From Macrostomum hystrix (taxonomy: Eukaryota > Animalia > Platyhelminthes): a stretch of 64,000 nt of DNA. The stretch is from the NCBI GenBank assembly GCA_950097015.1, contig CATNEN010000011.1:248001-312000 (forward strand). The letters are read 5' to 3'. Numbering within the stretch: position 1 is the first letter of the stretch; the number at the start of each line of letters is the position of its first letter. Position numbers and translations under genes: made by a program. Positions 18,934 through 41,832 of this stretch are shown here, piece by piece. The notes beneath the pieces were generated by a model that had not been told where the DNA came from, searched no databases, and saw nothing but the letters and a program-made list of their open reading frames with translations.

Positions 18934-21900
18934 AATAATAATAATAATAGTTACACTCCACGCCGACCACAGAAGTGGCCAAGAGGGGGGAGCGTCAAAA
19001 CGCGCGTTTCAGTGCCAGGTCTCTGACGTGCTTCACGCCTGCCGCCTGGCTGGGTGCTCGGGCGTCTTCAAAAAGGCGGTCAATATAGCGGGCTGTACGT
19101 CCCTGGCCGCGCCTGCGCGGTCCCTGCGAGGTCCACAGCAGGACATCCTGCAGCGGCTCTGGGCAGTAGGCTTCGGCGCGGATGACATGCCCGGCCAGCC
19201 GCAGTCGCCGCTGACTCAGCAGGACAGAAGGCCGCGTTAGGCGCGCACGCTGGTACAGGGACTCGGTTGTCTCGCTGCCAGGGCCGCGGCGGGCGCCGAA
19301 AGCGGCGCGAACTAGGGCCGCATGCGCCGCGTCGAGCTGCGCCTCGAGCGCCCCGGTCATCGTCCAGGTCTCAGCATTGTACAAGAGGGCGGTCTCGACA
19401 ACTGCCTGGAACAGCTGGGACCTGGCGCCGTTCGACAGGGCCTCGGAGAGTAGCACCGCCCGCACAGAACGGTAGGCGGCCCAGGCCTTGCCGCGTCGTC
19501 TCGCCAGGTCGTCGCCCACGTCAGGCACCAGTCCGCCGAGGTAGACGAACTGACGGCACTTCGGGAGCACGGTCCCGGGGCCGTCACCGTCTCTTAGTCG
19601 AATCTCGGCAGGTAGGTTTTGCGGCACCGTCAGCACCTCGGTCTTCATGGCGTTGATAGCGAGGCCGACCCTCGCCGCCGCCGCAGTCAGGCCATCCAGC
19701 AGCCGTTGGGCGCCTTCGGCCGTCGTAGACAGCAGGGCAAGGTCGTCCGCGTAGCCGAGGACAGACAACTTCTTCTCCGGGTGCCGTCGACTAGTGCGTC
19801 TTTGAAGCAGAAAACCGTCCTCTGCAGTCGGCAGGCCGGTCCTGAGCACCCAGTCCATCACCAGCACGAAAAGAAAAGGCGCCAGGGTGTCACCCTGCAG
19901 CACTCCGGAGGTAGTGCTGAACAGGTCCGACGGTCCGTCTGGCGTCGCTACCACAGCGGTGGTGTCCTGATACAGTGCCATGATGGCGGAGATCAGCTGC
20001 TGCGGTATGTTGTAGGCACGGAGCACGTGAGGCAGCGCGCCGCGGGCCACCGAGTCGAAAGCTTTGAGAAAGTCAACAAAGATGACGACAAGGCTTGACT
20101 GGTGGATGCGCGCCTCCTCGATGATGCGACGGAGGGCCAGGATCTGAGTCACCGTGCCGCGACGGGGCCGGAACCCATTCTGCTCGTACCGCAGAAACGA
20201 GTCCAGCACAGGCTGTAACCGTGCTAACAGCACCCGGTTGAACAGCTTCGCGGCACAGGACATGAGCGAGATCCCGCGATGCTCCTCCTTCTTTGTAGTG
20301 CCCGGCTTCTTCGGGATGCCGACGATGGTGGCCTGGGTCCACTCGCGGGGCGCAGGGCCTCCCGCCAGGACGCCGTTCATCACGCGGGCCACCTCGGTGG
20401 CAACCCTTGTGACTCGCAGTGCCTCTACGGGGACCTCATCCGGACCGGGGGCGCGGCCTCCCGGTGCCCTGCGGGCGAATTCCACGATGTCGGTGCTGGT
20501 CACTGGACTGGTGTCGAAGTCCTCCTGCCGCGGTAGCGCCACCTCGGGGGGCAGCGGCATCTCGTTCGGCAGAGTCGGCGGCGGCGCGTTGACAATGGCG
20601 GCGAAGAAGGTGCGCAGCTCGTTTCTGCGCTCCTCGGCAGTATCGCCAGCCAGGTTGAGCGCCGCTTTCGTTTTGCGACCGGTGAGGGCGTTCACAACGG
20701 GCCAGACGACCCTGTTCTGCCGTTCAGGCCCGACAGAGGTGACAGCCCGGATCGCGTCGTCAACAGCGGCTTTCTGTCGACTTGCGTAGGCGTCTGCCAG
20801 GGCTTTCTCGGCATCGGATGTCGGTCGCCTGGCTCGCCGCAGCTGCTCGACAGTGCGGCGGGCCTCACGTACCTCCGGGTCGCTCGCCCAAACTGGAAGT
20901 TGCCGTGACGCGGGTTCCATAAGCGGCAGAGTCTTGGCAGCGGCAGTGGCGATGGCTGAGCTAATTGTGCTGTAGTCCGGCGCCTGCGCTGATCCCAGGG
21001 CGGTCGCGAAGGCGTACGCAAACCTGCTGCGGGTGCCTGGGTCTTGCAAGGCGCGGAAGTACCTTCTTCTAGGGCGTTTTGGTGGTCGGTACAGCGGATC
21101 AGAGAGCCTCAGGTCGCAGTAGAGCAGGCGATGGTCGGACCGGACAGCCAGGGGTTCCATTGTGTCGCAGTTCTGCAGCCGGCTGCGTTCGCGATGGCGA
21201 ATCAGCACGTGGTCGAGCTGCGCCAAGCGGGTCGTAGCGAATCGGCCTCGCGCGTTCCGCCTCCTTCGCTTGCAGCCGGCGAAGGTCGCCAGCCGGTTGG
21301 GCGGTTTGCGGAAGCGCGTGTTGGCTGACACCAGGTCGAGCCTCGCCATCAGGTCCGCAAGCGCGGCGGTGTTGGCGTTCTGGCGTGGCGACACAAACGG
21401 GCAGCGCTGGGACCGCGGCGCTACGGCGTTGAGATCACCAAGCATCACCACAGTGTCGCGATGCGCCACCATCTCGAGCTGCTCCGACAGGAACTCGAAG
21501 AATTCCTGCGCCTCCTGCTGATGGGCAGCTGTGGGAGCGTACGCACAGAAAAGCCGCACATTGCGGCGACGTAGTCTCACGTCCACGCGCAGCAGTCGGG
21601 CTGACAGGCTGACGCAGCAGATGCTCTCGCGTAGCCGTGGTCCGACAAGCACGCCGACTCCTCCACGGCCTCTGCTGTCCGCTGATGTGTAGTGCAGCGT
21701 CCAGCCGCTCCCCAGATCCTCACGGTGTAGGCCAGACTCAGCAGTGATTGACACCTCCTGCAGCATGACGAGGTCCAGCCGCAGGTCAGATGCCAGCTTT
21801 GCGAGCATGCCCCTTCTCCAGGCAGACTTTAGCGTTCGGCAGTTAAAGGTTGCTAGCCTTAGAGCGCGGTTTGTAAAGGCTGGGGCCCGATGTTGGTGGG

Positions 21901-22244
21901 CCTCACGGTCCCCGGCGCCACCCGGCGGAGCCGACTGGGCGGGGGTCGGCAGATCAGTGTTGCCAGCAGACTGGCGGAGGCGGCCTTTCATTCGCCCTCG
22001 CCGGTTGCGTTCCCTTCGCCGCTCGGTGCGACGTCGGGTGCTTCGCTGTCCACGCCGTCCTCCCGACCTGCCCCACTTGGCAGCCGCAGCACCAGGGCGC
22101 GGCTCTCCGTGTTGGCCGAGGCAAGCGCTGGGGACTCCAGCGTCACCAGGAGGCGGCGGCATTTATTTGCACTAGGGTGCAAATAATTTAACACTGCAAA
22201 TAATTTAACACTGCAAATAATTTAACACTGCAAATAATTTAACA
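18934..22244 (-). mobile_element. Apparently full-length non-LTR retrotransposon, RTE-like
   Basis: 10-bp TSD CTTTGATCTT at 18924-18933 and 22245-22254; (TTA)5 3' tail; short 3' UTR; single APE-RT ORF. Confidence 0.92.
18995..22162 (-). CDS. 1055-aa apurinic endonuclease plus reverse transcriptase polyprotein
   Basis: APE motifs ATFNCRTL, LQEV, GVG, AYAPT, GDLNA, LDHV, SDH. RT motifs RGISL, QNGFR, FVDFLKAFDSV, GVLQGDTLAPFLF, YADD, FVYLG. C-terminal RLRLAGHVIR as in RTE elements. No stops. Confidence 0.95.
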   Translation of the reverse strand: MPPPPGDAGVPSACLGQHGEPRPGAAAAKWGRSGGRRGQRSTRRRTERRRERNRRGRMKGRLRQSAGNTDLPTPAQSAPPGGAGDREAHQHRAPAFTNRALRLATFNCRTLKSAWRRGMLAKLASDLRLDLVMLQEVSITAESGLHREDLGSGWTLHYTSADSRGRGGVGVLVGPRLRESICCVSLSARLLRVDVRLRRRNVRLFCAYAPTAAHQQEAQEFFEFLSEQLEMVAHRDTVVMLGDLNAVAPRSQRCPFVSPRQNANTAALADLMARLDLVSANTRFRKPPNRLATFAGCKRRRRNARGRFATTRLAQLDHVLIRHRERSRLQNCDTMEPLAVRSDHRLLYCDLRLSDPLYRPPKRPRRRYFRALQDPGTRSRFAYAFATALGSAQAPDYSTISSAIATAAAKTLPLMEPASRQLPVWASDPEVREARRTVEQLRRARRPTSDAEKALADAYASRQKAAVDDAIRAVTSVGPERQNRVVWPVVNALTGRKTKAALNLAGDTAEERRNELRTFFAAIVNAPPPTLPNEMPLPPEVALPRQEDFDTSPVTSTDIVEFARRAPGGRAPGPDEVPVEALRVTRVATEVARVMNGVLAGGPAPREWTQATIVGIPKKPGTTKKEEHRGISLMSCAAKLFNRVLLARLQPVLDSFLRYEQNGFRPRRGTVTQILALRRIIEEARIHQSSLVVIFVDFLKAFDSVARGALPHVLRAYNIPQQLISAIMALYQDTTAVVATPDGPSDLFSTTSGVLQGDTLAPFLFVLVMDWVLRTGLPTAEDGFLLQRRTSRRHPEKKLSVLGYADDLALLSTTAEGAQRLLDGLTAAAARVGLAINAMKTEVLTVPQNLPAEIRLRDGDGPGTVLPKCRQFVYLGGLVPDVGDDLARRRGKAWAAYRSVRAVLLSEALSNGARSQLFQAVVETALLYNAETWTMTGALEAQLDAAHAALVRAAFGARRGPGSETTESLYQRARLTRPSVLLSQRRLRLAGHVIRAEAYCPEPLQDVLLWTSQGPRRRGQGRTARYIDRLFEDARAPSQAAGVKHVRDLALKRAF

Positions 22245-22530: not shown

Positions 22531-23261
22531 TTCCGAATGGATTGTAGAAATGCATTGTAGCATTTGCATTGTAGAGCATTTGCATGCTATATGTATTGTA
22601 GAAATGCAGAAAAATGCTCATTCGACATGATACGATTTAAAAAAATTCTTTTTCTATTTCTTTTACTTAGAAAAACAATTTCTAAGTCACACTAAAAAGT
22701 TCGGAGGGGGGCATGCAGCTGCCCCCCGCCCCCCCCTAGATCCGCCGGCCATTGACTTTCTCTATGAATTTATTTCTAATAACGATCTAACGATATAATC
22801 TTTCTCTAGACTGATAACGAGCGGGCTGGGGTGGGTGCACGCGGGAAGCTTAATTTTGGCCACGCATAAAATATGCACAGCCCTCTCATTGGCTGGCACG
22901 AAAAAAACATTGACCTTACAGCCAGGCTCAAAATTATTGATTATTGTATTGATCATTATTGATTATAATTATTATCATAATATCATAATCATTATTGATT
23001 ATGATTATTGTACACAGGGGTCGGTCGCGTTACGCAAATTATTAAGATGAATTCGTACTCTAACGTTTACTTATAGTACCGCGTAATGAAAAGAAAAAAT
23101 AATGGCTTAAATTAAACATACGTGTTATTGTTAAAACAGCCTCCCTCGGGGCCACCAACACCTTACAACGTCACAATATTTTAGCAGAAGCGAAATGTTA
23201 TACTTTTATCTTTCTTTGAATTTTTAATCAGTAAAATTTATGATTAGCATAACATTTTTTT

Positions 23262-25170
23262 CACCCGACGGCAGAGGTCTAGACGGGGAAAAAGCTTAAA
23301 ATATCTCCCGTCTAGCCTGGAAAAAGCTCGTCTGTTAAGCTTTCTTCTATGGACTAGACCGGAAAAAGCTCATCTGTTTTAACTAACTAGTACTTCAATG
23401 CAGCAAGGCTAGAAATTAAGCGATTTATTGTGTTTTGTTTAACCTGTTAAAAATCCTAAATTTTGAAATACGACTTTGTTTTAAAGTGCTGTTTGAATAA
23501 AAACGAATTTAAAATTCATCAGCACGGGGCTGGCACTGGTATATGATTCATTATCAGGTTTGATGTTACTTGCAGAATTTACAAGCTAGTCAGTTGCTTT
23601 AAAGCTATACATAGATGTGACTTACATTGTATGGTGAAGTTGAAGATTGCTTTTTGTCGAATATGAATTTTCTTGTAATGTAACAGTAAAGCCACTATAT
23701 TACTACTTGCTAGATTAGAAAGTTGTAGTAACAGGTTACAGGAATTAACTATTAACTCAGGTTCTTTAGCTTTATGGGCTTTTTCTGATGTGAAACTTTT
23801 GTTAAGTAGAAATCAAGCTAGGCTATGCCTAGGCACGATATATTTTCTAAACATTTGATCTATTTATCCAATAATGTGCTGATAAAAACTGCATAGTTAG
23901 AACCTTTTGTTATTATTAATGCTAGTTTATATATATAAATGCTAGCTGTCCAGTCCTCTTAGTTACCCAGCCCTCTAAGCATTTGATCTATTTATCCAAT
24001 AATGGGCTGATAAATACTGCTTAGTTATAGCTTTTTTGTTATTATATATGCTAGTTAGTAGTTTAATATAGGCACTCATTTGCATGGAGAAAATTTATTG
24101 AATTGTTCTAAAATACCAAATAGCTTTTTATGTTATGATCTAGTCATATTTGTTAATTTAGAGACATTATCTATTTTAGTATTAAAATACATTTTGCAAT
24201 ATAAAGTATAACATATATATACCATATATATCCTGTCCTCCTAGCTACCCAGCCCTCTAGTCCTAGATATCCTGCCCCTAGCTGTCCAGTCCTAGCTAAC
24301 AATCTTGCCCCCCTAGCTGGCCAGTCCTAGCTAGCTATCCTGCCCCCTAGATGTCCAGTCCTAGCTAGGTATCCTGCCCCCCCTAGCTAGCTATCCTGCC
24401 CCCCCTAGCTAGCTATCCTGCCCCCTAGCTGTCCAGTCCTAGCTTGCTTTCCTGCCCACTTAGCTTGCCAGTCCTAGCTAGCAGTCTTGCCCCCCCTAGC
24501 TGGCCAGTCCTAGCTAGCTATCCTGCCCCCTAGCTGTCCAGTCCTAGCTAGCAGTCTTGCCCCCCCCTAGCTGTCCAGTCCTAGCTAGCAATCTTGTCCC
24601 CCCTAGCTGGCCAGTCCTAGCTAGCTATCCTGCCCCCTAGCTGTCCAGTCCTAGCTAGCAGTCTTGCCCCCCCCTAGCTGTCCAGTCCTAGCTAGCAATC
24701 TTGTCCCCCCTAGCTGGCCAGTCCTAGCTAGCTATCCTGCCACCCCTAGCTAGCTATCCTGCCCCCTAGCTGTCCAGTCCTAGCTAGCCATTTTGCCCCC
24801 CCCCTAGCTGGCCAGTCCTAGCTAGCTATCCTGCCCCCCTAGCTAGCTATCCTGCCCCCTAGCTGTCCAGTCCTAGCTAGCCATCTTGCCCCCCCCTAGC
24901 TGGCCAGTCCTAGCTCGCTGTCCTGCCCCCCCTAGCTAGCTATCCCGCCCCCCTAGCTGTCCAGTCCTAGCTAGCCATCTTGCCCCCCCCTAGCTGGCCA
25001 GTCCTAGCTAGCTATCCTGCCCCCCTAGCTAGCTATCCTGCCCCCCCCCTAGCTAGCTATCCTGCCCCCCTAGCTATCCTTTCCCCATAGCTGTCTAGTC
25101 CTACGCCACCTTCCTTTCCTCCCAGCTACGCTGCCTCCTTGCTCTCTAGTCCTTTCAGCTATCCTGCCAA
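23262..25170 (+). repeat. Left terminal inverted repeat (about 970 bp unique plus minisatellite at about 24230-25110)
   Basis: Reverse complement of 36450-38947. Inner part is an array of ctagctagctatcctgccccc and ctagctgtccagtc units. Inner boundary approximate. Confidence 0.88.
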
Positions 25171-25313
25171 GTACCCTGTACTTCATTCGATTCCTTATCC
25201 TTTTGCTTTCTTATCTTATTTATCAGTCCTAGCTCTGCAGTACCTTTTAATTCTGCAACCTGTTTTGTTATTAGTATCTGTAACCTGCTGGTTTTTCGTT
25301 TTAACTTTTGCAG

Positions 25314-28241
25314 ATGGTTCACACTGCGTATTCATCCTTTTTGCAGGAAAATAAACGATTCGGTAAGATAGTATTCTTCATTGTATGTGCTTTCTTAATC
25401 CTTTTTAATTGTGTAAGTAATATAAGAATAAGTTCATGCATTTTTTTCATTTTTTTCTTGAAACGGATGTGTATATGTACATGTTTAATGATGTGATTTT
25501 AGTTATTTAGCATATCCATGAAGCTGACAAGTCGTTTATACTGTAGCTAATTGCTCAATTTTTTTAATTGGTTGTTATAAAGCAAAATCCCGAATGTACA
25601 GTAAAGGTAATAAAGGTGCATGATATATTTATACTGTTACTTTTCTATTTTCAGATCAACAGAAGGAGTTGGCAGCCAGATTCAAGTCTCTCTGTGGCTC
25701 GGAAAGACAGCGGCTCGCTGCAAAGGCAGCACAGACTGCCCCCAAGCTCTCAACGATAGAGAAAATGGTAAACTGCATTTTTTTGCTTGGCGGACTCACT
25801 TTTTATCGCTACCACACCTTTTTGATTTGCTATCACACCTATCGAAAAGTTTAGCTTCGCAAGGACCCATCGTGGAAATTTTTTTTAATTGTGGCCCGTC
25901 AGGATAAGCCACCATACTTTTCATGCAGCCCAGAAGATGTAGAACTTCATCCATTGGCGCGGCAAGTGTCAGAGGTATGAGCCACGTCTCATTGGTTAAT
26001 GACCTACGCTTACTCTTGATTAATTAATAATGCTCTGTTTAAAACTATTTTTAGAAGCTTATCGGCCATTTGAAAAATCCGCCTAAAAAAGCATAATGGG
26101 TTTGAGAAAGGCCCTTCGCAAGCAGGCTCAGGATGCATATAGTAAGTTATTTTTCTCTAGCTGGTTTTTGGGCATATACAGATCCTAGAGAAGATCAAAT
26201 TTATTTTAGCGTTCAATGTGGCTATGAATAATCTTATTGGTAATTAAGATGTGTCAGCAGTAAGATTGTAATAGGAAACTACTTTTATTAGGGATTATAT
26301 TATAGTTAAATAGACAAAACGTGACAAAAGTTGCCACATTTTTTGGATTGTTAACATTTTAGATGCAGCAGGGTTTCATGGCCGCGTCCAATGGAAGAAG
26401 TTGCCTATAATTGGCCAATTCGAACCATGGTTATGCGATCCTACATGGATGACAATGGAGTCTATTAAAGCGGCACTTTCGAGCCCTATCGTATTCCATC
26501 CATCAAGATCAGGTCTTAGTTTTAGTTCTTACTTCTTACTTAGCTAAACTTACTTACTTACTAACTAAACTAAACTAAACTAAACTAAACTAAACTAAAC
26601 TAACTAATAAACTAAACTTACTTCTTAGTTTAGCGCACAATATGAAGTTATTTCGTTATTTACACTGCTTTACTTTACCGATTTATACGATAAAGGTGAT
26701 TTTAATTAGTGCAGAGAAGTTTGAGTGCTTTGAAATATCGTCTAGCTGTTTCCGTTTATTCACTGACTGATTTATCCTTATTTTAAAATCATGACTCAAT
26801 TTAAACTAGCCGTTTTGTTTAATTTCTTTATTTCTCTCCAGTTCCAATCGACGTAAGCGAACCCGAAGGCAACGAAGACCATATCGACCAATCAGAAGAC
26901 CTTGACTGGCCGAGCTCCGGCGGTCCGCACTTCGGTGTGCCGAGCTCCAGTGGGCCTAGAGGCGGTGGGCCTAGTGGCGGCGGGCCGAACTCCAGCGGGC
27001 CTAGAAGCGGTGGGCCGAACTCCAGCGGGCCTAGAAGCGGTGGGCCTAGTGGCGGCGGGCCGAACTCCAGCGGGCCTAGAGGCGGTGGGCCTAGTGGCGG
27101 CGGGCCGAACTCCAGCGGGCCTAGAAGCGGTGGGCCGAACTCCAGCGGGCCTAGAAGCGGCGGGCCGAACTCCAGCGGGCCTAGAAGCGGCGGGCCGAAC
27201 TCCAGCGGGCCTAGAGGCGGTGGGCCTAGTGGCGTCGGGCCGAACTCCAGCGGGCCTAGAGGCGGCGGGCCGAACTCCAGCGGGCCTAGAGGCGGCGGGC
27301 CGAACTCCAGCGGGCCTAGAAGCGGTGGGCCTAGTGGCGGCGGGCCGAACTCCAGCGGGCCTAGAAGCGGTGGGCCTAGTGGCGGCGGGCCGAACTCCAG
27401 CGGGCCTAGAGGCGGTGGGCCTAGTGGCGGCGGGCCGAACTCCAGCGGGCCTAGAAGCGGTGGGCCGAACTCCAGCGGGCCTAGAAGCGGCGGGCCGAAC
27501 TCCAGCGGGCCTAGAAGCGGCGGGCCGAACTCCAGCGGGCCTAGAGGCGGTGGGCCTAGTGGCGTCGGGCCGAACTCCAGCGGGCCTAGAGGCGGCGGGC
27601 CGAACTCCAGCGGGCCTAGAGGCGGCGGGCCGAACTCCAGCGGGCCTAGAAGCGGTGGGCCTAGTGGCGGCGGGCCGAACTCCAGCGGGCCTAGAAGCGG
27701 TGGGCCTAGTGGCGGCGGGCCGAACTCCAGCGGGCCTAGAGGCGGTGGGCCTAGTGGCGTCGGGCCGAACTCCAGCGGGCCTAGAGGCGGCGGGCCGAAC
27801 TCCAGCGGGCCTAGAGGCGGCGGGCCGAACTCCAGCGGGCCTAGAAGCGGTGGGCCTAGTGGCGGCGGGCCGAACTCCAGCGGGCCTAGAAGCGGTGGGC
27901 CTAGTGGCGGCGGGCCGAACTCCAGCGGGCCTAGAGGCGGTGGGCCTAGTGGCGGCGGGCCGAACTCCAGCGGGCCTAAAAGCGGTGGGCCGAACTCCAG
28001 CGGGCCTAGAAGCGGCGGGCCGAACTCCAGCGGGCCTAGAAGCGGCGGGCCGAACTCCAGCGGGCCTGAAAGCGGTGGGCCGAACTCCGGTGGACCAGGA
28101 AGCGGCGGGCCTAGAGGCGGCGGGCCGAACTCCAGCGGGCCTAGAAGCGGCGGGCCTGAAAGCGGTGGGCCGACAAGGGATGGGGATTTAGCTAATAATG
28201 TTTTGTATGAAGATGGAGAACTTTTTGTTCTTGCTGATTAA
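25314..28241 (+). CDS. Transposon companion gene: HMG-box-like N-terminus, conserved-looking middle domain, Gly/Pro/Ser repeat tail; one apparent 1-nt deletion
   Basis: GT-AG exons 25314-25362, 25655-25767, 25855-25974, 26055-26141, 26363-26512, 26842-28241. All phases agree if one A is restored in the A6 run at 26085-26090. [11 protein letters not shown]...[11 protein letters not shown]...ERQRLAAKA resembles HMG helices. Confidence 0.75.
26530..26625. repeat. (ACTAA)n microsatellite in intron 5 of the companion gene
   Basis: Direct reading of actaaactaaactaa... Confidence 0.85.
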
Positions 28242-30530
28242 TTATGCTTCTTAACATGGCGCGCAGCACAAAGTTATTTCGCAATATATATTTTACTGCA
28301 AAGTAGTTTGAGTGCTTTGAAACATGGTCTTGCTGTTTTGTATTAGATAATTTGTGATTTGATGATTTGTACGAGCTATGTAGAACTTTTTGTTTTTACT
28401 GATTAATTTTGCTCGTTTCGGGTGGGTGCGGTGGGTGGTAATTGAGGGTGGGTGCCGGGTCCCCTCAGTCCATGGACTGAACAGCCGTTCGCAGCCTTCA
28501 GGTGCGCCGCGCAGTAGCTGCCAGCTGTGCTGTCGGATGCACATGTGGCAAGATTGGGACAGGCGTAATCGATTATTATTAAAAATATTATTATCATCGT
28601 AGTGCGAGTGCACACAAAGTCTTGCACTTTTGAATCCACCACCAAAAATTAAAACGGCAATATTGTTTTCGTGACCTAGACAAGGCACGCAATTTATGTT
28701 ATCAATGTTTGAACAGAATGTGCAGCTGAAGAGAATTAAAAAAAATGCTTCCTGTTTTCCACTTCTTTCAAGTACAAACTAAAAAACTGTCGAGGCAGAT
28801 TGAGAGGCGGCGGATAGCAGTACATGTGCCACGGATGGTCGTATGCGACCGGCCAAATTGTCGACCAACTGCACGGATCGTAAACGAGTATACTGGGCAG
28901 CGGCAGCTTTAATAATCCAACTCTCCCTCACCCCAACCAAAGGCTTAGCACCTTGCGCGTTGTGCGAATTGCGCAAGTTACAATACTGCGGAGAGGGAAA
29001 TGGATCACTAGTTGGGATGAGTGAGTTATTCAGGGTGGACACGCGCAGGTTTCAATTGCGCAAGTTGTGATAGGAGGGAGAAATTGCTCACTTGCTCATG
29101 TGAACACTTTTCAATGTCCAATAGTGTAACACTGACAATATCAAAGCGTAGCTTTTAACAGATATTAAGGGATAACTCTGATATCATAGCCTAGCACTGG
29201 TAGTAGGTTAGTTTTAGGGTAGATTGTACAGATTCGATTTTAGGATATTGGGATTTAGGGAAGTGCTTAGAAGATAAAAACATTTACGTGGGGAACTTTT
29301 AGTGACAATCGTATACTAAAATAGTTGCTTACAAAAATAGTAGGGGCATTAAAACAGTAAACGCTTATTCTTCCTTTTAATAATATACTTTATCGATACT
29401 CACGGCTGCATCTTATTCGTCCGTCCGTTATTTATAAGATCGGAGGTTTTGTCTGCACATCTGTTCTCGAGATGTCGGTTTTCGAGCAGTCAGATTTTTT
29501 TACATTTTCCATGAAATTAGGTAAAGAGAAGGTAAATTCCTAAGGTGAGTTCTGTACCGCTGGCTTAGCCGACCAACACCTAGAATCATGCTGATGATGC
29601 GTTCCTTGATACACAAACAACCATGAGCTGTAAACTTTGGCACGAGGACCATTAGTAAAAGGGATGTTACACTACTCATAAGCATAAAAGGATATGAAAA
29701 AATGAAATGCCGCCTTCGGCAAAACCGGGCGACCAGACTTGGGGTAAACCCCGAACCCGGAACCCGACCCGGACCCAAAAACCGACCCGACCCCGAACTT
29801 TACCCGACTATCTCCTGGACTTGGAGTGATGGCTAAGAAGAGTACTTGTCTTAAAATACCGCCTTTTCCTTTTTCTACTTTTCTATTGTTAACTCTTCTC
29901 CCCCACTATCACTACACTACTCGACTCCGAGGACAGTCGTACTCTTCACTTTACCCTCTACTCCTGAAAGCCTCAGGCAGGTTTGTATGTTAAAAATTCA
30001 GATTTAAGTTGCTGACGTGGGATTACATAGCTAACGAAGTAAAAAGAAAACATAATTAAAGACCATTTAAAGACATAATGCAGAATTAGGATGAGCTGTT
30101 TAGACTTTAGAAATATGTATATCTATATGTATGTATTATAATTCAAGGCCTAAAATTCGTAGAATGATTTATATACATTAGAATGACTAAGGCATCACGA
30201 TTATTAATTCATTAGTGCAGTGCAAATTACGCCAGTTCAGTTTAAGAAAAAAATATTTTTGAAATGGCGCGATTTCGAAAGACGCTTTATCACGTAATAA
30301 GGCAATACTTAAATAAAACTGATAATAATAAAAACACCGGAAACCTGAACCCGGTACCAAAACCCGACCCGAAAACCCGAACCCGAACACCCAACCCCGA
30401 ACCTCGAACCCGACCCGGACATCTACACCCGAACCCGGTACCAAAACCAAGAGCAAGAAAACTGAGAAACTTCAATTCTAGACTTCATTTGCTTTCAAAG
30501 ACTATAGTCTGAAGCTACATGTATACTGCA

Positions 30531-30895
30531 TACGAGGGGGTTAAAAAGTTTTGCCGTTGACTACTTTGAGAAGCCACTTCTACTCTTCGAGAAGAAGCTA
30601 AAAGTTTGGGGAATCAAAGGTTCGGATCCATGCACCCATGAAAGCTCGTCGAGAGGCATTTCTAGAAGGCAATGCGCATGACACTTGTTCTGCGACCGCA
30701 CTGGACCCCTTACGATCGAGCTTATGCAGGAGCCTGACACAAGCATCAATTCTGATCGCTACATGTACATGTACTGAAGGATGCATGACATTCAAAACAA
30801 GCGTCACAGAGACACCAAGCCCTTCATTCTCCATCACGATAATGCAATAACACACACTGCTCAGAAGACCACTGAGGCTGTCACAAGGCTCAAAC
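30531..30895 (+). mobile_element. Decayed, internally deleted mariner-like fragment
   Basis: TA-initiated TACGAGGGG...AAAAAGTT terminus typical of mariners; FILHHDNAITHTAQKT matches the mariner second-Asp motif HHDNAxxH. Confidence 0.6.
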
Positions 30896-31834
30896 CTTCT
30901 GCCACACCCGCCATACTCGGCCAATTAGCTTTGCTCGACTGGCTCACTACAGTCTGCAGCAGCAAGCACCAGGACGCAGGTGTCGAGCGGCGCTTCGTGC
31001 CGCCCTTCCTGCGTTCCTCCCGTACATGTACTTTTGTGTCTCAACCCCTTGCCCAGTGTATTTGCAATTACCCCCACCAGCCCAATCCGGTTCTCCGGTT
31101 TGTCTGGCCCTCGGCTTAGCCAGGCAGGCCGCTGATTGGCTGCAAACACTTATTTTCTCGACGCTCTAATTCTCTTCTTCGCCTCTCGGCTCTACTGCAG
31201 CCTGCCCCAACCCCAACACCCAACTCGGGGTGGCTAAGCCCCACTCCTCCCCTTCTCACCTCCATGGATGCGAGGCTGGTGCGAGCCAATTTTGCGTCTG
31301 CCACCCCCTGGCAATGTCATTGGCTGGAGGGCGCAGCCCGGCCCCGCCCCTGCTCTGATTCTCTCGCCCCTCCCCGCCACTATTTATTTGTGCGCTCCGC
31401 TCGCCATGCCATAACGCGCTCTCGACCGCCCTACCCTGCTTAATTGCTCCGGAAAACTTGGTTTGACGCGCGGTCTCTTACTCCGACGAATCAAATCGAT
31501 TACCTAAGATCAGATTTTGACACTTAGAAGAACCACACAGTGCATTGCGGTGAGCGCAGGCACAGAGCAGAGGATTGCCAATAATACTGAGCAGTCAGCG
31601 CGTGCACGACCTGCACTACTAGCCCGAGACGCGATTTATGAGCTCCCGGTAAGATTCGACTTTCCGCGTTTATTATTTCACCTGGTTGTTCTCATTGCTC
31701 GAGCGTCTTCGGTTATTTACGTTACGTTCGATGGAGTCCGAGTGGCCGTCTGCTCACTCGACACTTTTATTATCCGTTATTTCGATCATTATTGTCTGCA
31801 AAGTGTCCGTACGCCTCCAGGCTTTTGCTTACCC

Positions 31835-31950
31835 TAACACTCTGTAGTGCACAAGACCGACTGCAGGTGAGATGGCCAGGCAGATGCTGAGGTTCTGACC
31901 GCGCTGACCATTCACAGTCGCATTGGTTCTGTCCGATTGAGATGTCCAAC
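31835..31950 (-). pseudogene. IS630-Tc1-like transposase fragment
   Basis: TVNGQRGQNLSICLAISPAVGLVHY resembles the GQRGxNxxxCxAISxxGxxH segment of Tc1-like DDE domains; short and isolated. Confidence 0.45.
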
Positions 31951-32570
31951 CCAGCAGAAATTGCAGAAATTGCTTGCAAACTTGCCTAACTAGCATGCAA
32001 AAAGGTACGGTATAGTCGAACTCCACAGCTTAATTACAGTGAATGAGACTAGGCAAATATGCATTTACGTGTCAATTCCGATATTCATGGTAGATCGGCT
32101 ACTGCTAGTAGTTAAGCAGAATTATGAAAAAAACGAAGGCGCATTAACACTGCCTTTTAGGGTTTGACATTTGGTTTGTTGTTACTTTTTAGCAAAGTAA
32201 CTGCGACCATATCCAATCAATTTTCAAAATGGACGCGAATTCTCGCTTCTCTCGCCACTGTGGCATAAGAATTGTGCTCAAAGTAACAATTATTATTAAC
32301 TAAATCGCAGCACTGAAAACAAAAGTAATAAAATAGCGCGCTAGTGAGTAGATTCACAAAGTTGTTTTGATGTAAATCCACAGTCAGCAAGAAATACAAG
32401 AAATACAATTTTCCGTATTAAGGAAGATTGTACTGCAACAATATAAATGGGAACTGTAGGAAGTAATTGTGCACACCAATAACACATCGAAAAAATTTCT
32501 TCTGTTGCAGTTAAATGAGTTAGAAAATAACAGAAAGAAAAAAACTTTTATCTTGCACGACACCGTAAAA

Positions 32571-35500
32571 TCAATGCATTTGTGCGATCACATCAACGCA
32601 TTGAAACCGCAGGTCTTCAAGGACATGGCGACAATGGGAAAGCAAGCCTGTTTTGCCTTGTAACGACTCGATTTCTTGATAGAGCCGTAACTGCAGACGC
32701 GAAGCTTCTTCGCGGATCAGATTTTTCTCCTCACCTATTCGGGAAAATAGAGACGAAGCTTCGATCATGAGAAGACGATACCGTGCAGCAGGTTCAGATA
32801 GAGACACGCCGCAGTAGACATCGGCCGTTGGATTGTAATATGTGGCCAGAGGTTCCCGTGAAAATTGTGGCAGATCCTTGGACCAAATGGCCGCCATTTC
32901 GCGCTGAACAACAGACAATCGCGCGATGTACACCTTGGCGTCGCTTTGTGCACTGCATTGGCGAAGGCTTGCATACAAGCGCAGCCGCTCAACAGCTCCG
33001 CACCGAAGGCGCTCTAATGGAGTCAGCGGAGAGGATTCTTCTTCAACTAAATACTCCTGAAGGTGCAGCTGTCCTCGTAGAAATAGCTGGTGCGGCTCAC
33101 GATCTGAAAAATATGATTTCATTGCACGACTGTTTTATTGCTTTACTCACGCGAGACAACCGCAATTAAGGCAGTGTGTTACCTTCTGGAAGCAATTTCT
33201 GCAAGAGACTGGTCAGAGACGCCGAGTGCCTGCGCAGCAAACGAAGTCTGTTTTGCAGCCATTTCCCTGGAGTGGAGGAAGTTGAAAAAAATTCTTTCAA
33301 TAAATCGGCGCCCATAAATGATAACCGCCATCGAATAACTGAATAAATGACATCCATTTTTAATACATTTGCTGTCAAAAGTTGAGGATATATACATTTT
33401 CAACCTTTAAACTGAGAAAATATGCGACAGAGAACAGAGAGATAGCATTAAAGTAAAAGGACAAAAAATCAAACACTGACCACATTCCAGTAAGTGACTG
33501 ACATTCGAACGCCAAATGTAATGAGCTAGAGTGTAAGTGCGGTGGTCAATGCGCATCTCCTTTAACTGTGGGCCGTATGGTCGGAACGATGAATTCAACC
33601 TCTCACAGTGTTCGCCATCGGTTAGGCCGCAGCCTTCAACGAATCTAACTGAGTTTTTTAGCTGAAATATGAAATAATAGGAATGATATGTGGCAAAAAA
33701 TATAATGTACAATCAAAACTATTTTCTTTCTTGTTTTGGTACGAACAAATGTAATACGAAATTTATAAATGAGACACAAAATACATACTCGGCAGGATGT
33801 CTTGTGAGCGAATGCATGAAAGGCGTTTACAGCAGGAACAATGGTTACATATGGATAGTCAGCCGCGATCTGCTGCAATCGACGGAACATCTTGCAGGCA
33901 ATGTCATAGACAAAGATGACTACCCCATTTACGCCACTTGCTTCCAAGAAGTATCGAAGACATTGTTCAGCGTATACAAGGCGTTCTCCTGGCGATCGGA
34001 TGTCAGCGCATGAAACTATAATTGAGTGGCGACAGGAGAGCATGAAGAGTCCGTTAACATCAAGGGCTCTTGAAGAAATTCTCCGAGTGACTGAGCCAGC
34101 TTGAAAATTCGAACACGAAGCAGTATCTTCGCCAGCTTCCTTGGGATCGACATCAACATGAATAAAAGGTGCCGGAAGACGACCATCGAGTGGTGATGGA
34201 CACAGCTGCTGACCAGCCCGGCGTCTGTGACGCAAACCCATGCACCCATCTCCTGTGACGATTGTTGTGGACGGCAACGAACCTGGAGTGTTCTGAATAA
34301 TTTGACGGATCCGCGATTTAAATTTTACAACAATTATTGATTCGTGTATACATGCGAATGCTTGCATTTTAGTAAATTTCAACAGTGATCTAATTAAGAG
34401 CAGCAATTTAGAAATTAGACACCGTAGCTGGGGTAGCAAATTTTAGACACAATGTGCACTTCGTCTATCGTCTTTCCTAAGGAAAACCTGCTCAATTTCG
34501 AAAAACAGTAGCAAGTTATTACTCACAGCATCTGGACACAACAAGCAACCGGTCGGCCAAGGAAGCACATCGCGAAGAAGTTGCCTATATCTTTTAAGCA
34601 CATCGTTTCGACGAAGAGCATCGTATAAATGCAGCCATGTCTGGAAACGAAAATGTTTTTCCAATTGTTATCGGCTTTGAGTTTGTTGGTAAAACGCTCT
34701 ATACTTAACCATATTTATATTTTAAGATACTATCCCATTTTTAGTATATAGGACTAGAAGATACAAGTTTTTTATAACTTACGCGCTGTCGACCCTCAGT
34801 GATATTATCAAACGTAAGCAAGCAGCGCACAGCTCGTAGAAGTGACATCTTTCCGTCGGATGTGAGACAATCGAGCATATCCAGAAGTCTCTTGTGAATG
34901 AATTTGTCGGAACTAACTTTTGTAACAGGAAAGTAGCCCGCAATAAGCATAGCATCGTTAATAGAACATTCCGCACAAAGATGAACTGACACAAAGATGC
35001 GATCTAAAATGATATTGCCCCAGAATGTAAATACGTAAAACAATGTTAATACGGGTAGCACCATCGCAATACACAGCAAATGTTAAAAATTACGTACGAC
35101 CAAGATGGTCGTATACATTAGCAGACGTGCTACTATGTAAATCCTCTCGGGAATTAACACAGCAATGAATGACAGGCCGCTCAGCAGGAGTAGAGTCTTG
35201 GTACATCTCTCCCTATAATGAGTTTGAAGAGTAAACGAAAGTCACATCCACGACATAAGAAGATGCACTTTCATATGAAGTTATGAACAGTCAACTTACA
35301 TTCCACTCGGTAAATTTGTGCACCAGAAAGGTGCCATGCGTATCTTTCATACAATCCGAGCAGAATTTGCTGGCGCATGTAGTACAATATACGAAACCAT
35401 CATTCATGCAGCGGCAGCACGGCTGTAGAATAAATTGCTTTAGACAGGCAGACGACTGCTGCTCAATAACTGGTTCTTCTCGCTCCCAGTCCTGTAGAGG

Positions 35501-35725
35501 CTGCTGCAACTTTGGTGATGCTGCCACGGAATCTACGACGTCCCAGTCCCTTTCTGCATGATCTGATACATGATCTGCTACAGAATGCTGAGAAGCTGCG
35601 GATTCCTGACTGCTTTGAGTAGTTTGCCGGTTAAAGTTGGCTCTAGCGACATTATAGGGCAGAAAGAGTGAACCACGGCCGCGGCGCCGCGATACTCGGA
35701 TGCCAAGATTTACTGAACGAGGAAA
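32571..35725 (-). CDS. KDZ (Kyakuja-Dileera-Zisupton) transposase, spliced, first exon not located
   Basis: Zn cluster CCRC...CTTC...CSDC...H...HKFTEWNG; CxC2-like CAEC...LIAGYFPVT; CLLCP; catalytic region GDG, SCRH, GER..Y, YDIAC, FHAFAH...C, GCGLTDGEHCER. About eight GT-AG exons with compatible phases and no internal stop found. Confidence 0.88.
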
Positions 35726-35783
35726 CTGAAATAAAATAAAGCATAAGAAAACTACAGTAAGGAAAAAGGAACAAAGTAGTGCT

Positions 35784-36100
35784 ACAGCAGGGCAGGGGCT
35801 GGTGGTGGGGCAGGGGCAGGACTACTGCAGGGTTTGGGCAGGGGATGGGACTGGGCAGGGGCAGGGGGTTTGGGGCAGGGGCAGGGACAGGGGGTTGGGG
35901 CAGGGGCAGGGGGTTGGGGCAGGGGCAGGGACAGGGGGTTGGGGCAGGGGCAGGGACAGGGGGTCGGGGCTGGAGCAGGGGCAGCGGCTGAGGCTGGGTC
36001 TAGGGCAGGGGTAGGGCATCGGTAGAGGCAAGGGGTGGGGTAGGGGCCAGACAAGGGCAGTGCGAAAGTTGGACAGGGGCAGGGGCAGGGGCAGAGCAGG
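35784..36100. repeat. (GGGGCA)n-type G-rich repeat upstream of the KDZ gene
   Basis: Direct reading of ggggcaggggcaggg... Confidence 0.85.
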
Positions 36101-36449
36101 GTCCGTGTCATATAAAGGGAACATAATAAATGACTTCGTTAAATCCAGCTTTATAGGCCACAGCTTGTAGTATATAAATATAACCTTCTAGCTAGTGGTT
36201 GGTATAGCTACCCTGGTAAGGTTGGCAGGTTGCTCATAACTGGAGATTTATCTTAATTTAAGTAATTAAATGAAATATGAATTGTATCTCATTTGTCATA
36301 TAATAGTTTAGGAAATCAAATAGATATAGCCTTATTTAATCACTTCGAAATAGTGCCTCGGTTAGCAATATAAAATCATAAACCAAGTTTAATAAATTAT
36401 TCTTTATAATAAATTATAAAGAAAAAAAGTATTCTTGTATAAATACTGG

Positions 36450-38947
36450 ACTGGACTGGATAGCTAGCTAGGACTAGAAAGCTAGGGAGGCAAGATAGGA
36501 CTAGACAGCTAGTGGGGGGGCAGGATAGCTAGCTAGGACTGGACAGCTAGGGGGGCAGAAAAGCTAGCTAGGAATGGACAGCTAGGGGGCAGGATAGCTA
36601 TCTAGGGGGGGCAGGATAGCTATCTAGGGGGGGCAGGATAGCTAGCTAGGGGGGCAGGATAGCTAGCTAGGGGGGCAGGATAGCTAGCTAAGGGGGGCAG
36701 GATAGCTAGCTAGGACTGGCCACCTAGGGGGGTGGCAAGATTTCTAGCTAGGACTGGACAGCTATGGGGCAGGATAGCTAGCTAGGACTGGACAGCTAGG
36801 GGGGCAGGATAGCTAGCTAGGACTAGGCAGTTAGGGGGGCACTGGGCACAATAGCTAGCTAGGACTGGACAGCTAGGGGGCAGGATAGCGAGCTAGGACT
36901 GGACAGCTAGGGGCCAGGATAGCTAGCTAGGACTGGACAGCTAGGGGCCAGGATAGCTAGCTAGGACTGGCCAGCTAGGGGCCAGGATTGCTAGCTAGGA
37001 CTGGGCAGTTAGGGGGGCACTGGGCACAATAGCTAGCTAGGACTGGACAGCTAGGGGGCAGGATAGCTAGCTAGGACTGGACAGCTAGGGGCCAGGATAG
37101 CTAGCTAGGACTGGCCAGCTAGGGGCCAGGATTGCTAGCTAGGACTGGCCAGCTAGGGGGCAGGATAGCTAGCTAGGACTAGACAGCTAGGGGGGCAAGA
37201 TTGCTAGCTAGGACTGGACAGCTAGGGGGCAGGATAGCTAGCTAGGGGGGCAGGATAGCTAGCTAGGGGGGCAGGATAGCTAGCTAGGGGGGCAGGATAG
37301 CTAGCTAGGGGGGCAGGATAGCTAGCTAGGGGGGCAGGATAGCTAGCTAGGGGGGCAGGATAGCTAGCTAGGGGGGGCAGGATAGCTAGCTAGGGGGGCA
37401 GGATAGCTAGCTAGGGGGGCATGATAGCTAGCTAGGACTGGCCAGCTAGGGGGGGCAAGATTTCTAGCTAGGACTGGACAGCTAGTGGGCAGGATAGCTA
37501 GCTAGGGGTGGCAGGATAGCTAGCTAGGACTAGGCAGTTGGGGGGCACTGGGCACAATAGCTAGCTAGGACTGGACAGCTAGGGGGCAGGATAGCTAGCT
37601 AGGACTGGACAGCTAGGGGGGCAGGATTGCTAGCTAGGGGGGGCAAGATTGCTAGCTAGGACTGGACAGCTAGTGGGCAGGATAGCTAGCTAGGGGGGGC
37701 CTGGATAGCTAGCTAGGACTGGCCAGCTAGGGGGGGGGCAAGATTTCTAGCAAGGACTGGACAGCTAGTGGGCAGGATAGCTAGCTAGGGGTGGCAGGAT
37801 AGCTAGCTAGGACTAGGCAGTTAGGGGGGCACTGGGCACAATAGCTAGCTAGGACTGGACAGCTAGGGGGCAGGATAGCTAGCTAGGACTGGACAGCTAG
37901 GGGCCAGGATAGCTAACTAGGACTGGCCAGCTAGGGGGGCAAGATTGCTAGCTAGGACTGGACAGCTAGGGGGCAGGATAGCTAGTTAGGACTAGACAGC
38001 TAGGGGGGCAAGATTGCTAGCTAGGACTAGACAGCTAGGGGCAGGATATCTAGGAGGACTAGAGGGCTGGGTAGCGAGGAGGACTGGATAAATATAGTAT
38101 ATATATATGTTATACTTTATATTGTAAAATGTATTTAATACTAATATAGATAATGTCTCTAAATTAACAAATATGACTAGATCATAACATAAAAAGCTAT
38201 TTGGTAGTTTAGAACAATTCAATAAATTTTCTTCATGCAAATGAGTGCCATATAATTTTTTATATAACTACTAACTAGCATTTATAATAACAAAAAAGCT
38301 ATAATTAAACAGTATTTATATAATTTATCAGCACATTATTGGATAAATAGATCAAATGTTTAGAAAATATATCATGCCTAGGCATAGCCTAGCTTGATTT
38401 CTACTTAACAAAAGTTTCACATCAGAAAAAGCCCATAAAGCTAAAGAACCTGAGTTAATAGTTAATTCCTGTAACCTGTTACTACAACTTTCTAATCTAG
38501 CAAGTAGTAATATAGTGGCTTTACTGTTACATTACAAGAAAATTCATATTCGACAAAAAGCAATCTTCAACTTCACCATACAATGTAAGTCACATCTATG
38601 TATAGCTTTAAAGCAACTGACTAGCTTGTAAATTCTGCAAGTAACATCAAACCTGATAATGAATCATATACCAGTGCCAGCCCGTGCTGATGAATTTTAA
38701 ATTCGTTTTTATTTAAACAGCACTTTAAAACAAAGTCGTATTTCAAAATTTAGGATTTTTAACAGGTTAAACAAAACACAATAAATCGCTTAATTTCTAG
38801 CCTTGCTGCATTGAAGTACTAGTTAGTTAAAACAGATGAGCTTTTTCCGGTCTAGTCCATAGAAGAAAGCTTAACAGACGAGCTTTTTCCAGGCTAGACG
38901 GGAGATATTTTAAGCTTTTTCCCCGTCTAGACCTCTGCCGTCGGGTG
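36450..38947 (-). repeat. Right terminal inverted repeat (minisatellite at about 36450-38090 plus unique outer part)
   Basis: Mirror of the left TIR, with a longer satellite array. Confidence 0.88.
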
Positions 38948-41832
38948 TTTTTTTCGTGTTGCTCAGAAGTCAAAACAGAACGATATCACCATCTATAAGT
39001 CTATTGCCAAGAGATGGATTTACTAAAATTTAATATAAGCAGTACCACACTACCAGTCTTCATCTTGTACGTTTGATCTTTTGTTGAAGACGACGCATTT
39101 TTATACGACCTGCACCCTAAATAAGTTTGGCATTATACATTTTTCAATCTCGTCAGCTCACTTAAATAAGTAGGCCCAACTTAAGAATAATAATTTATGG
39201 GCCCCTAGCAGTGCTGCCTGCAAATACTTGTAGCCTAACCTTTTTAATGTAGCCACATTTTCAGCTCTAGTTCGGCCTATTTTCTACTACAGTCTACAGT
39301 ACTAGGTTCAATGGCAGCACTCTTATTTTGCACTTTACCCATCCATTTCAGTTTTTAAGTGATTAGGCCTATGAATAAACAACCAGTTGATTGATCTTAA
39401 GGGAATGAAGCATGAACAAGTATTTTGTACTAGGCCTAAGCAGTTTAGCAGAAAAGAAAAGGCAAAATGCTTGGCCTAGTTCTGCAGAAAAGGCTCAGGG
39501 GCAATCTTCTGGTTTTAGGCCTACACATTTAATTATTAACAAAAGTTAACTTTTCCTAAATTAAGATAAGCAAAAATTTATAATTGTCTAGCTAGGCCTA
39601 CTGGCAGTGTATGGAGCTATGTCTATGGCAAAATAGGCCTAGGCCTACTTGCAGTTGCAGGTTTTGAATGACATGTCAATGTTATGTTTATGAGTTTAAA
39701 ACTTTGTCCACCTTGGAATTCTTTGCCTCAAATCCCACCTTGAAATGTAATAACATATTAAGGTAGAGGATTCCACCTCAAATTTTCTGTCTCTGTCTCA
39801 AATATATAGGGCCTACATGATAATAATATTACTAATATCAAATAAGTTACAAGTAAAATGTGAGACTTGATGCCATTATGAATTTTAGTCAAAATTGATT
39901 TAGAGAGCTCACTTTCAGTTGGAGGATTCAGCCTTCAATTCAGCCTTATCTATTTCTTGTTTAATAATGTAATGTGGTCAATAATAATGGTATCATGTGA
40001 CAAATATTACTAGGTAAGCCTATACTGAGTTGATAGTAGTCATACATGCGCAACACCTGGCCGACCCAGCCAAACCAGCCAGGTGAAACAAGGGCCAAGC
40101 AAGGTAAGTCACAAAAACCAATCAACTAAGTGCAAAAAAATTAAAGGGGGACCAAAGGACAAAAAAGGAAGGTGTGAAGAAGAAGAAAAAGGGGAGAGAA
40201 AAAATAGAGCAAATGAGAGCAAACTAGGCCTAAGTCATAAATAGAGCAATGAAACGAACTAGGCCTATGTTGCAATTGAGAGCAAACTAAGTTGTAAATA
40301 GAGCAAAAACTAAGTCACACAGCCGGCTAAGATTTGGGAGGTTGCACATGTATGATACTAGTTACAATTATCAAGACAAAATTCAATGCAGAATTCAAGG
40401 TGGAATTCAAAGTGCTCATCTAAATAAGAGTAGCATGAGTGAAAAGCTGCCTAAAAGGCCAAATAGCACTGGAAAGGACTACCAAATGATAGTCCTAGAC
40501 CAGTATACTTTTGATAGAGATAGATGGCACAATAGTACAATGTACATATCCTCTACTCAAGAAAATTTGGACTAGGACTCCATTGTTACTTGTGAAGCTT
40601 ATACCAGTAGGAAACCCTATGTGTATCTGATATTGGGAAGAGTGTCACTATTGTATTGAGATATATGTATATGGCATATTTTATATAACAATCACACTAG
40701 GGCCTAGTAGGAGCTAACTTTAGTAAGTTCCAATAGTTTTATAGTTTCACCCTATTGGAGCAAATAGGGGTTTATGTGGACAGCGTCCGGCACACTTGTG
40801 AAACATTGCCTGCGCGGCTGCAGGTCAAAAAAGGTCATTTGGTATGTGTCCATATTTTCGCAAAATCACCACGTAGCTGTTCTATTTTTAGAAATACACT
40901 ACGGAGATCAAAAATGGTCTTTCAACATTTTTTTCACAAAATCAATCATCTAGTTGAGTCAGACTGAAGATATTTAGACTGAAGATACAATATTGAAGAT
41001 ATATAGCAATTGCATGTTTGGGCTCTTTTTCTTGAAACCAGCTGCGCACTTGTGTGCCCAGCGGGAGTGTCCACAGCTTTTTTTAATTTTGCTCCATTAG
41101 TGTAGTTTCATAAAAAATTTTAACATAAAAGTTATAAGCCTACTTGAATATTTTATATTTTATATATATTATATTTTATAGGCAAAAATATTGAATTTGA
41201 AATGTTTTTATGTTTTTATTACTTTTATACTTGGTTGTAGCACTTTTTAATACACTTTTTGTTTATTATGGCAAAAATACATCTTTATGATTGATTGCCA
41301 AAATCTATATAATTTGCAGCATAGTATGAGTATATACCTTTTTTTCTTTGATTTTAAATATTTTTTTGTATTCGCTGTCACTTATTTTTTCTTGATAGTG
41401 ATTTGTGTTTTATTTTTAGGACTATCTTATTGCCTTTTGTATTTACCAAGTTAAAGTTAGGCAGCCTGTTGCTTTTTGTTGGTTTATTTCCTAAATATTC
41501 AGACACATTACCACTTTTTTGTAATAAAACAGAAAATTCATGTTCACCTTAAAAAGGTTGTTGATTACGATTACTCGTATGCATATGGTAAACTAAATAA
41601 AGGCCTAATATATGTTCAATTGTATTTTCTAGTCTGTGTTTATAGTAGACAAAGTTTCTAAAAAAAATAAAATGCTTGTAGCAGAATTTTCTATTCTTAG
41701 ACAAGATCTATTTTCTTAGACAAGAAGCTGTAAGCATTACATTAAGAGCATGCTATCACTCCTTAGATTGCAGAAATTAGCTATTAGCCAGCTTGCAAAA
41801 AAACCTTCAAGGTACCAGAGACTAATTGAAAA

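Follow-up and report, generated by a model that had tools for sequence, protein, structure and literature searches.

A candidate accessory-protein gene within the inverted ends of a KDZ transposon family of the flatworm Macrostomum hystrix

Cut-and-paste transposons with two genes have already been described, and in fungi KDZ elements carry a passenger gene encoding a TET/JBP dioxygenase. In En/Spm (CACTA) elements two proteins, TnpA and TnpD, arise by alternative splicing of one transcript, and one of them binds the subterminal repeats. A two-protein arrangement, consisting of a transposase and a Myb/SANT-like protein, is also a feature of PIF/Harbinger elements (PMC12730594). Published Zisupton elements are described as creating 8-bp target-site duplications (PMC12730594) and as possessing one large multi-exon transposase gene (PMC9297572). 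Here we describe a KDZ-type element of Macrostomum hystrix that contains, besides its transposase gene, a second gene without recognisable relatives, referred to below as the companion gene. The element is located in a stretch of 64,000 nucleotides (contig CATNEN010000011.1 of assembly GCA_950097015.1, positions 248,001 to 312,000, forward strand), the whole of which is called the window. Unprefixed positions are those of the window, and other genomic positions are given with their contig, the window itself being part of C11. We tentatively propose that the companion is the second gene of the transposon and may encode an accessory transposition factor, a reading whose probability we put a little short of evenly balanced. 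Our literature search found no description of an animal KDZ element that combines an orphan companion with 7-bp duplications.

The element spans 23262-38947 (15,686 bp) and is flanked by the target-site duplication ttttttt at 23255-23261 and 38948-38954. Its left terminal inverted repeat (23262-23886, plus strand) has its partner at 38324-38947, with arms that are 100% complementary, and the resulting inverted ends are perfect over about 625 bp (arms of 360 plus 267 nt). Further inward, a subterminal satellite array with units of 18-107 bp occupies 24263-25076 and has an inverted counterpart at about 36500-38250. The KDZ transposase gene (32571-35527, minus strand) comprises several exons and is convergent with the companion gene. 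Minus-strand open reading frames (ORFs) of this gene at 33407-34439 match PF18758 with E-values of 1.5e-18 and 1.3e-9 (67.8 and 38.5 bits), and the gene also has a B-box-like zinc finger that scores below the Pfam cutoff. Our analysis revealed six full copies of the element in the genome, ranging from 14.9 to 22.3 kb and 99-100% identical over the companion gene. The tips are identical in all six (CACCCGACGG), each site showing a different 7-bp duplication. In addition, there are many short pairs of tips lying ~300-1300 bp apart (e.g., G000:C38:29521352-29521722, C40:206972-207412 and C1:27000107-27000537), which look like miniature inverted-repeat transposable element (MITE) derivatives of the same family. 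Two of three such derivatives checked had a clean 7-bp duplication and the third did not. When all ten insertions checked in two families are considered, the duplication was 7 bp in nine, the exception being one MITE-like derivative with none. The PF18758 domain, together with inverted ends bordered by target-site duplications at independent insertions, identifies the element as KDZ/Zisupton-type, and it represents a recently active, autonomous cut-and-paste family of the KDZ superfamily.

When compared to the described systems, the element resembles the Zisupton/KDZ elements of fish, nematodes and fungi in having PF18758 in a multi-exon gene, terminal inverted repeats and target-site duplications, but its duplications are 7 bp instead of 8 bp and it has an added orphan gene. 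With En/Spm it shares CAC-starting tips, long inverted subterminal repeat arrays at both ends and two element proteins. However, the two proteins of our element would be the products of two convergent genes, and the target duplication is 7 bp long. The likeness to PIF/Harbinger concerns the inverted ends, between which lie a transposase gene and a further gene, transcribed separately, for a small protein, while the transposase of our element is of KDZ and not of PIF type, and the companion carries neither a Myb/SANT nor any other Pfam domain.

The region 25314-26940 consists of short open pieces bordered by consensus splice sites, and a preliminary description of the window had proposed that five such exons, missed by ORF prediction, splice into one frame. 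We compared 25080-26960 with the Logan contigs of four public runs, three of which (X2, X3 and X4, derived from one organism and one study) were informative. Their contigs skip 25363-25654, 25768-25854, 25975-26054, 26142-26362 and 26513-26841, producing the joints 25362/25655, 25767/25855, 25974/26055, 26141/26363 and 26512/26842. The gene thus has six exons and five introns, all of the GT..AG type. The library type of these runs is absent from the record, but the presence of spliced joints and of a spliced leader (see below) indicates that they contain RNA-derived sequence. The splicing proposed earlier was therefore confirmed by five joints in three runs, and the peptide pieces quoted at that time match exons 1, 2, 4 and 5. 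Two details had to be corrected, since the exons are six in number and the window copy does not keep one frame, being frameshifted in exon 4 at a run of six A's (A6). Furthermore, the gene does not end at 26940, as exon 6 continues for a further 1.3 kb to a stop codon at 28239-28241.

All exons lie on the plus strand. Exon 1 (25314-25362) holds 16 codons plus 1 base, exon 2 (25655-25767) is basic and helical and corresponds to the part previously called HMG-like, and exon 3 (25855-25974) shows the highest conservation. Exon 4 (26055-26141) includes the A6 run at 26085-26090, and exon 5 (26363-26512) corresponds to the part previously called GTF2I-like. Together exons 1-5 encode ~170 aa with a net charge of about +15. 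Exon 6 (26842-28241) begins with an acidic head, followed by a tandem repeat at 26939-28171 (~1.2 kb of DNA with periods of 15-330 bp, translated into ~410 residues of Gly/Ser/Pro/Asn/Arg) and by a short, non-repetitive C-terminus with a conserved motif. The intact product would have ~640 aa, arranged as a basic N-terminal part, an acidic stretch, an Arg/Gly-containing low-complexity spacer and a hydrophobic/acidic C-terminus.

Concerning the 5' end, the AG at 25312-25313 (plus strand) immediately precedes the ATG, and loose contig ends were found at 25313/25314. In one contig, 22 unmatched letters stand before 25313, and together with the G at 25313 they form 23 nt that equal the 3' end of the Macrostomum lignano spliced leader (35 nt), the sequence of which has been printed (PMC8629364). 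Given that this leader sequence is joined in the contig at 25313/25314, the companion mRNA receives the Macrostomum spliced leader by trans-splicing directly at the ATG, and 25314 marks a trans-splice acceptor site, not a transcription start. The 23-mer occurs 43 times in the genome when up to one mismatch is allowed, including regular arrays with a period of ~11.7 kb, and it has no occurrence in the window. In the paralogue described below, the ATG likewise directly follows an AG. A second contig joins the same acceptor (25313/25314) to a different 5' piece of 107 nt. The last 30 nt of this piece are found on the same strand at G000:C11:247919-247948, 52 nt before the start of the window, and are followed there by GTAAG, placing the donor of the upstream exon at G000:C11:247948/9 and implying a cis splice of ~25 kb. 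Either a chimeric read-through transcript or a chimeric contig would account for this joint. The same 30-mer is also present on C1, and a contig chimera is hence possible.

The question of whether the gene is conserved as part of the element was addressed by searching for relatives, with all domain, profile and fold tests applied to each exon separately. The protein of exon 5 had one diverged match in the genome, on contig C39, and exon-by-exon tblastn recovered at that site all five short exons in equal order and with equal phases. The identities between the paralogues amount to 44, 62, 68, 59 and 49% for exons 1 to 5, respectively, the value for exon 4, which is one open frame in the paralogue, being calculated over its 29 codons. 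The last exon on C39 has an acid/His-rich head, a different tandem repeat of Arg/Gly type and a C-terminus that can be aligned, with a Tyr, a Glu and the run Gly-Glu-Leu-x-Val-x-Ala in common. This gene belongs to a second element (G000:C39:4610101-4628264, 18.2 kb), which has inverted ends of 967 bp (99.9%) and its own 7-bp duplication. Its tips are 79% identical to those of the window family, the pieces of its KDZ gene are 44-76% identical to the KDZ gene of the window, and the two genes are again convergent. Summed over exons 1-5, the proportion of nonsynonymous differences (pN) was 0.28, and that of synonymous differences (pS) was 0.79, i.e., saturated. Moreover, blastn between both elements yielded no intron match. 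The low pN against a saturated pS and the lack of any intron match show purifying selection on the companion protein as a part of the element. Exons, phases and identity have been kept despite saturated synonymous sites, a pattern far beyond chance. The earlier proposal of a separate gene that travels with a KDZ transposase is supported by these data, as the companion is spliced, expressed, enclosed by the inverted ends of every one of the six copies and present in a second, diverged family. In having a second gene within the ends that is conserved with the transposase across element families, the element resembles two-gene transposons of the Harbinger and En/Spm type.

Profiles of exons 3 and 5 detected no further relative in the 220-Mb genome except for a remnant at C1:15.94 Mb. 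The genome harbors at least 50 further KDZ-domain loci of several other families, some of them single open frames of 827-845 aa, and none of these loci has a relative of exon 3 or exon 5 nearby. Since the genome-wide profiles match nothing else, the companion appears to be specific to one KDZ lineage and to have no host paralogue. The remnant itself (G000:C1:15941016-15942187) is a rearranged set of companion parts, tandemly triplicated with a period of 314 bp and ~90% identity. Contigs with an odd joint, 26204/26469, and 13 inserted letters were present in all three runs and probably stem from this remnant, which may thus be transcribed. Beyond the genome, the exon-5 profile was compared exhaustively by HMMER with 1.84 billion protein representatives and revealed no relative, its single match being an unrelated repeat protein in which 15 residues were matched seven times. 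A feature search of the ESM Atlas found nothing. Two metagenome contigs retrieved in a scan with exon 3 were discarded, as the search pattern itself had picked them out and they match none of the other exons.

The companion gene varies among the six copies. In the window, the A6 run of exon 4 causes a frameshift leading to a TAA at 26094-26096, whereas the spliced RNA contigs contain one extra A (A7), which keeps exon 4 open throughout and leads on into the peptide of the preliminary description. A7 was found in three of the six genomic copies (C1:10.73 Mb, C1:25.89 Mb and C38:24.60 Mb) and A6 in the other three (the window, C11:189 kb and C5:5.10 Mb). Both copies on C11 have, in addition to A6, two further variants in common, and the deletion thus looks inherited and not an assembly error. 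In the C5 copy, a homopolymer error of the assembly is possible. Programmed -1 frameshifting or transcriptional slippage at A6 was considered and set aside, given that three copies have A7 and the C11 copies share variants, so that an inherited 1-nt deletion is simpler. At position 25877, an A (Lys) is private to the window copy, and all other copies have a G (Arg), the paralogue also encoding Arg. Exon 6 encodes 385-505 aa in five copies, with an identical C-terminus and a varying number of repeat copies, and the 22-kb copy at C1:10.73 Mb has an interrupted exon 6. The companion gene is therefore completely open at C1:25.89 Mb and C38:24.60 Mb, the only two copies that combine A7 with an uninterrupted exon 6. 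Each of the three A6 copies is flanked by its own target duplication and represents an independent insertion. Either elements with a defective companion gene were able to transpose, or some copies carry an assembly error in the run. The window copy is a frameshifted allele, which could have been mobilised only with companion protein provided in trans, assuming that the protein is required at all.

The reading of the companion as an accessory transposition factor is suggested by its place inside the ends, its fixed position and orientation, the purifying selection, the absence of a host copy, the basic N-terminal part and the conserved C-terminal motif. According to this model, the basic N-terminal part would bind the tips of the element or its subterminal satellite arrays, and the tail and C-terminal motif might contact the transposase, or else the nuclear import or chromatin machinery, in parallel to the Myb-like protein of PIF/Harbinger and to TnpA of En/Spm. 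Copies with A7 may supply the protein in trans to A6 copies, as would be the case for the MITE-like derivatives. The composition of exons 1-5, i.e., their basic character, is the sole hint of binding to DNA ends. A number of observations weigh against such a role. No exon-wise test of the companion recognised a DNA-binding domain, and the AlphaFold models of single exons are of low confidence (exon 5, hairpin plus helix, with a predicted local distance difference test score, pLDDT, of 54; exon 3, strands plus helix, pLDDT 66). Conservation rests on two families, with no relatives outside the genome found in the searches made, and the evidence for expression consists of assembled contigs from one study. 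Furthermore, three frameshifted copies that were inserted separately indicate that the gene is dispensable in cis, and perhaps altogether.

The same frameshifted copies, still inserted, would also be compatible with a role directed toward the host and not toward the transposition reaction. The Arg/Gly-rich tail could make the companion an RNA-binding or condensate-forming protein that shields the transcripts of the element or weakens silencing by small RNAs. Both families have kept a long low-complexity tail containing Arg/Gly despite its differing sequence, and the variation of exon 6 between 385 and 505 aa would fit a tail of this kind. However, Pfam revealed no domain related to RNA binding or silencing, and it is the N-terminal region that is best conserved and not the tail. 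We thus consider a host-directed role unlikely.

It had also been suggested that the N-terminus is a diverged HMG box, which would bend DNA, and that exons 4-5 form a repeat of the TFII-I (GTF2I) type, so that the companion would be a detached partner comparable to the HMG box that HMGXB3 carries fused to its KDZ domain. When Pfam was applied at E<=10 to all exons of both paralogues (exon 1, with 16 aa, being too short), neither HMG_box nor GTF2I was found. A RAWUL match on exon 4 of the paralogue (E 0.09) was attributed to chance. For the HMG box (PF00505), with a family cutoff of 25.4 bits, exon 2 of neither paralogue gave a match at E<=10. We also built a local profile from 14 HMG boxes of the same genome. 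Exon 2 aligned to profile positions 34-57, with an hhalign probability of 12.7% and a P-value of 0.0023. Exon 1 fell on positions 6-17, which together is the register expected for helix 1 and helices 2-3. When scored against this profile with HMMER, exon 2 reached 4.0 and 2.3 bits, and exon 1 reached 0.4 and 1.7 bits. Such scores were matched by 2-10% of shuffled sequences, and for exon 2 by 5 of 300 shuffles in the window copy and 13 of 300 in the paralogue. The register, the low counts among shuffles and the basic N-terminal part speak for an HMG box. On the other hand, all scores are below the significance threshold, ~18 profile positions (about 18-34) between both matches have no counterpart, and the invariant Trp of helix 2, which belongs to the conserved aromatic core of the L-shaped fold of three helices and ~70 residues, is replaced by Phe in the window copy and by Tyr in the paralogue. 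Judging from the alignments, exons 1-2 appear to have a faint resemblance to the HMG box, not membership in it.

Regarding the second half of that suggestion, the resemblance to the TFII-I repeat (PF02946) is a pattern seen by eye across exons 4-5. The putative module would span both exons, each of which was tested alone. PF02946 (75 positions, cutoff 27 bits) had no match at E<=10 in exon 5 of either paralogue or in exon 4 of the paralogue, and none in the six frames of the whole genome. The order of hairpin and helix in the exon-5 model would suit a repeat of this type, but the exon-5 profile had no match at E<=10 among the sequences of solved structures in the PDB, and Foldseek with the low-confidence exon-5 model returned noise only. 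Three PDB matches of the exon-3 profile, including Talin and IL-9, were at chance level (E 0.25-0.8). Our literature search found no paper joining Zisupton with GTF2I, or HMGXB3 with Zisupton. On these exon-by-exon results, we consider a combined HMG and GTF2I identity very improbable. We give equally little credence to a related idea, namely that the module of exons 3-5 might be a new DNA-binding fold by which one KDZ lineage recognises its own subterminal repeats, or might be very distantly related to the TFII-I repeat. If the latter were true, a domain that is so far vertebrate-centred would have its origin in a transposon accessory protein. That the companion is merely a passenger, derived from a host gene or part of one that an ancestral element had picked up, and of no service to the element, would agree with the lack of any recognisable transposon-related domain and with half of the copies being broken in this gene, but we deem it highly unlikely in view of the absence of a host paralogue, the position and orientation kept relative to the transposase, and an open frame with identical exon phases and a pN well under pS across two families with saturated synonymous sites.

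The element described here is a young animal KDZ family that still looks intact, with clear ends, target duplications, MITE-like derivatives and an orphan gene under selection in two lineages. As it resides in a flatworm genus amenable to transgenesis, it offers a tractable system for establishing what a KDZ transposase needs in order to move. It is also a clean example of a transposon gene that depends on the spliced leader of the host for its 5' end. ORF-based annotation of transposons overlooks companion genes of this kind entirely.

Two further features were noted in and around the element. Between the 3' ends of both genes, ORFs at 30600-31150 exhibit a C-terminal signature of mariner/Tc1-like transposases, 'HHDNA..H', and probably represent a fragment nested within the KDZ transposon. 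An unrelated ORF of a long interspersed nuclear element (LINE) lies at 18995-22162 (minus strand), a short way beyond the transposon's left end. It looks intact and encodes 1055 aa with endonuclease and reverse transcriptase domains.

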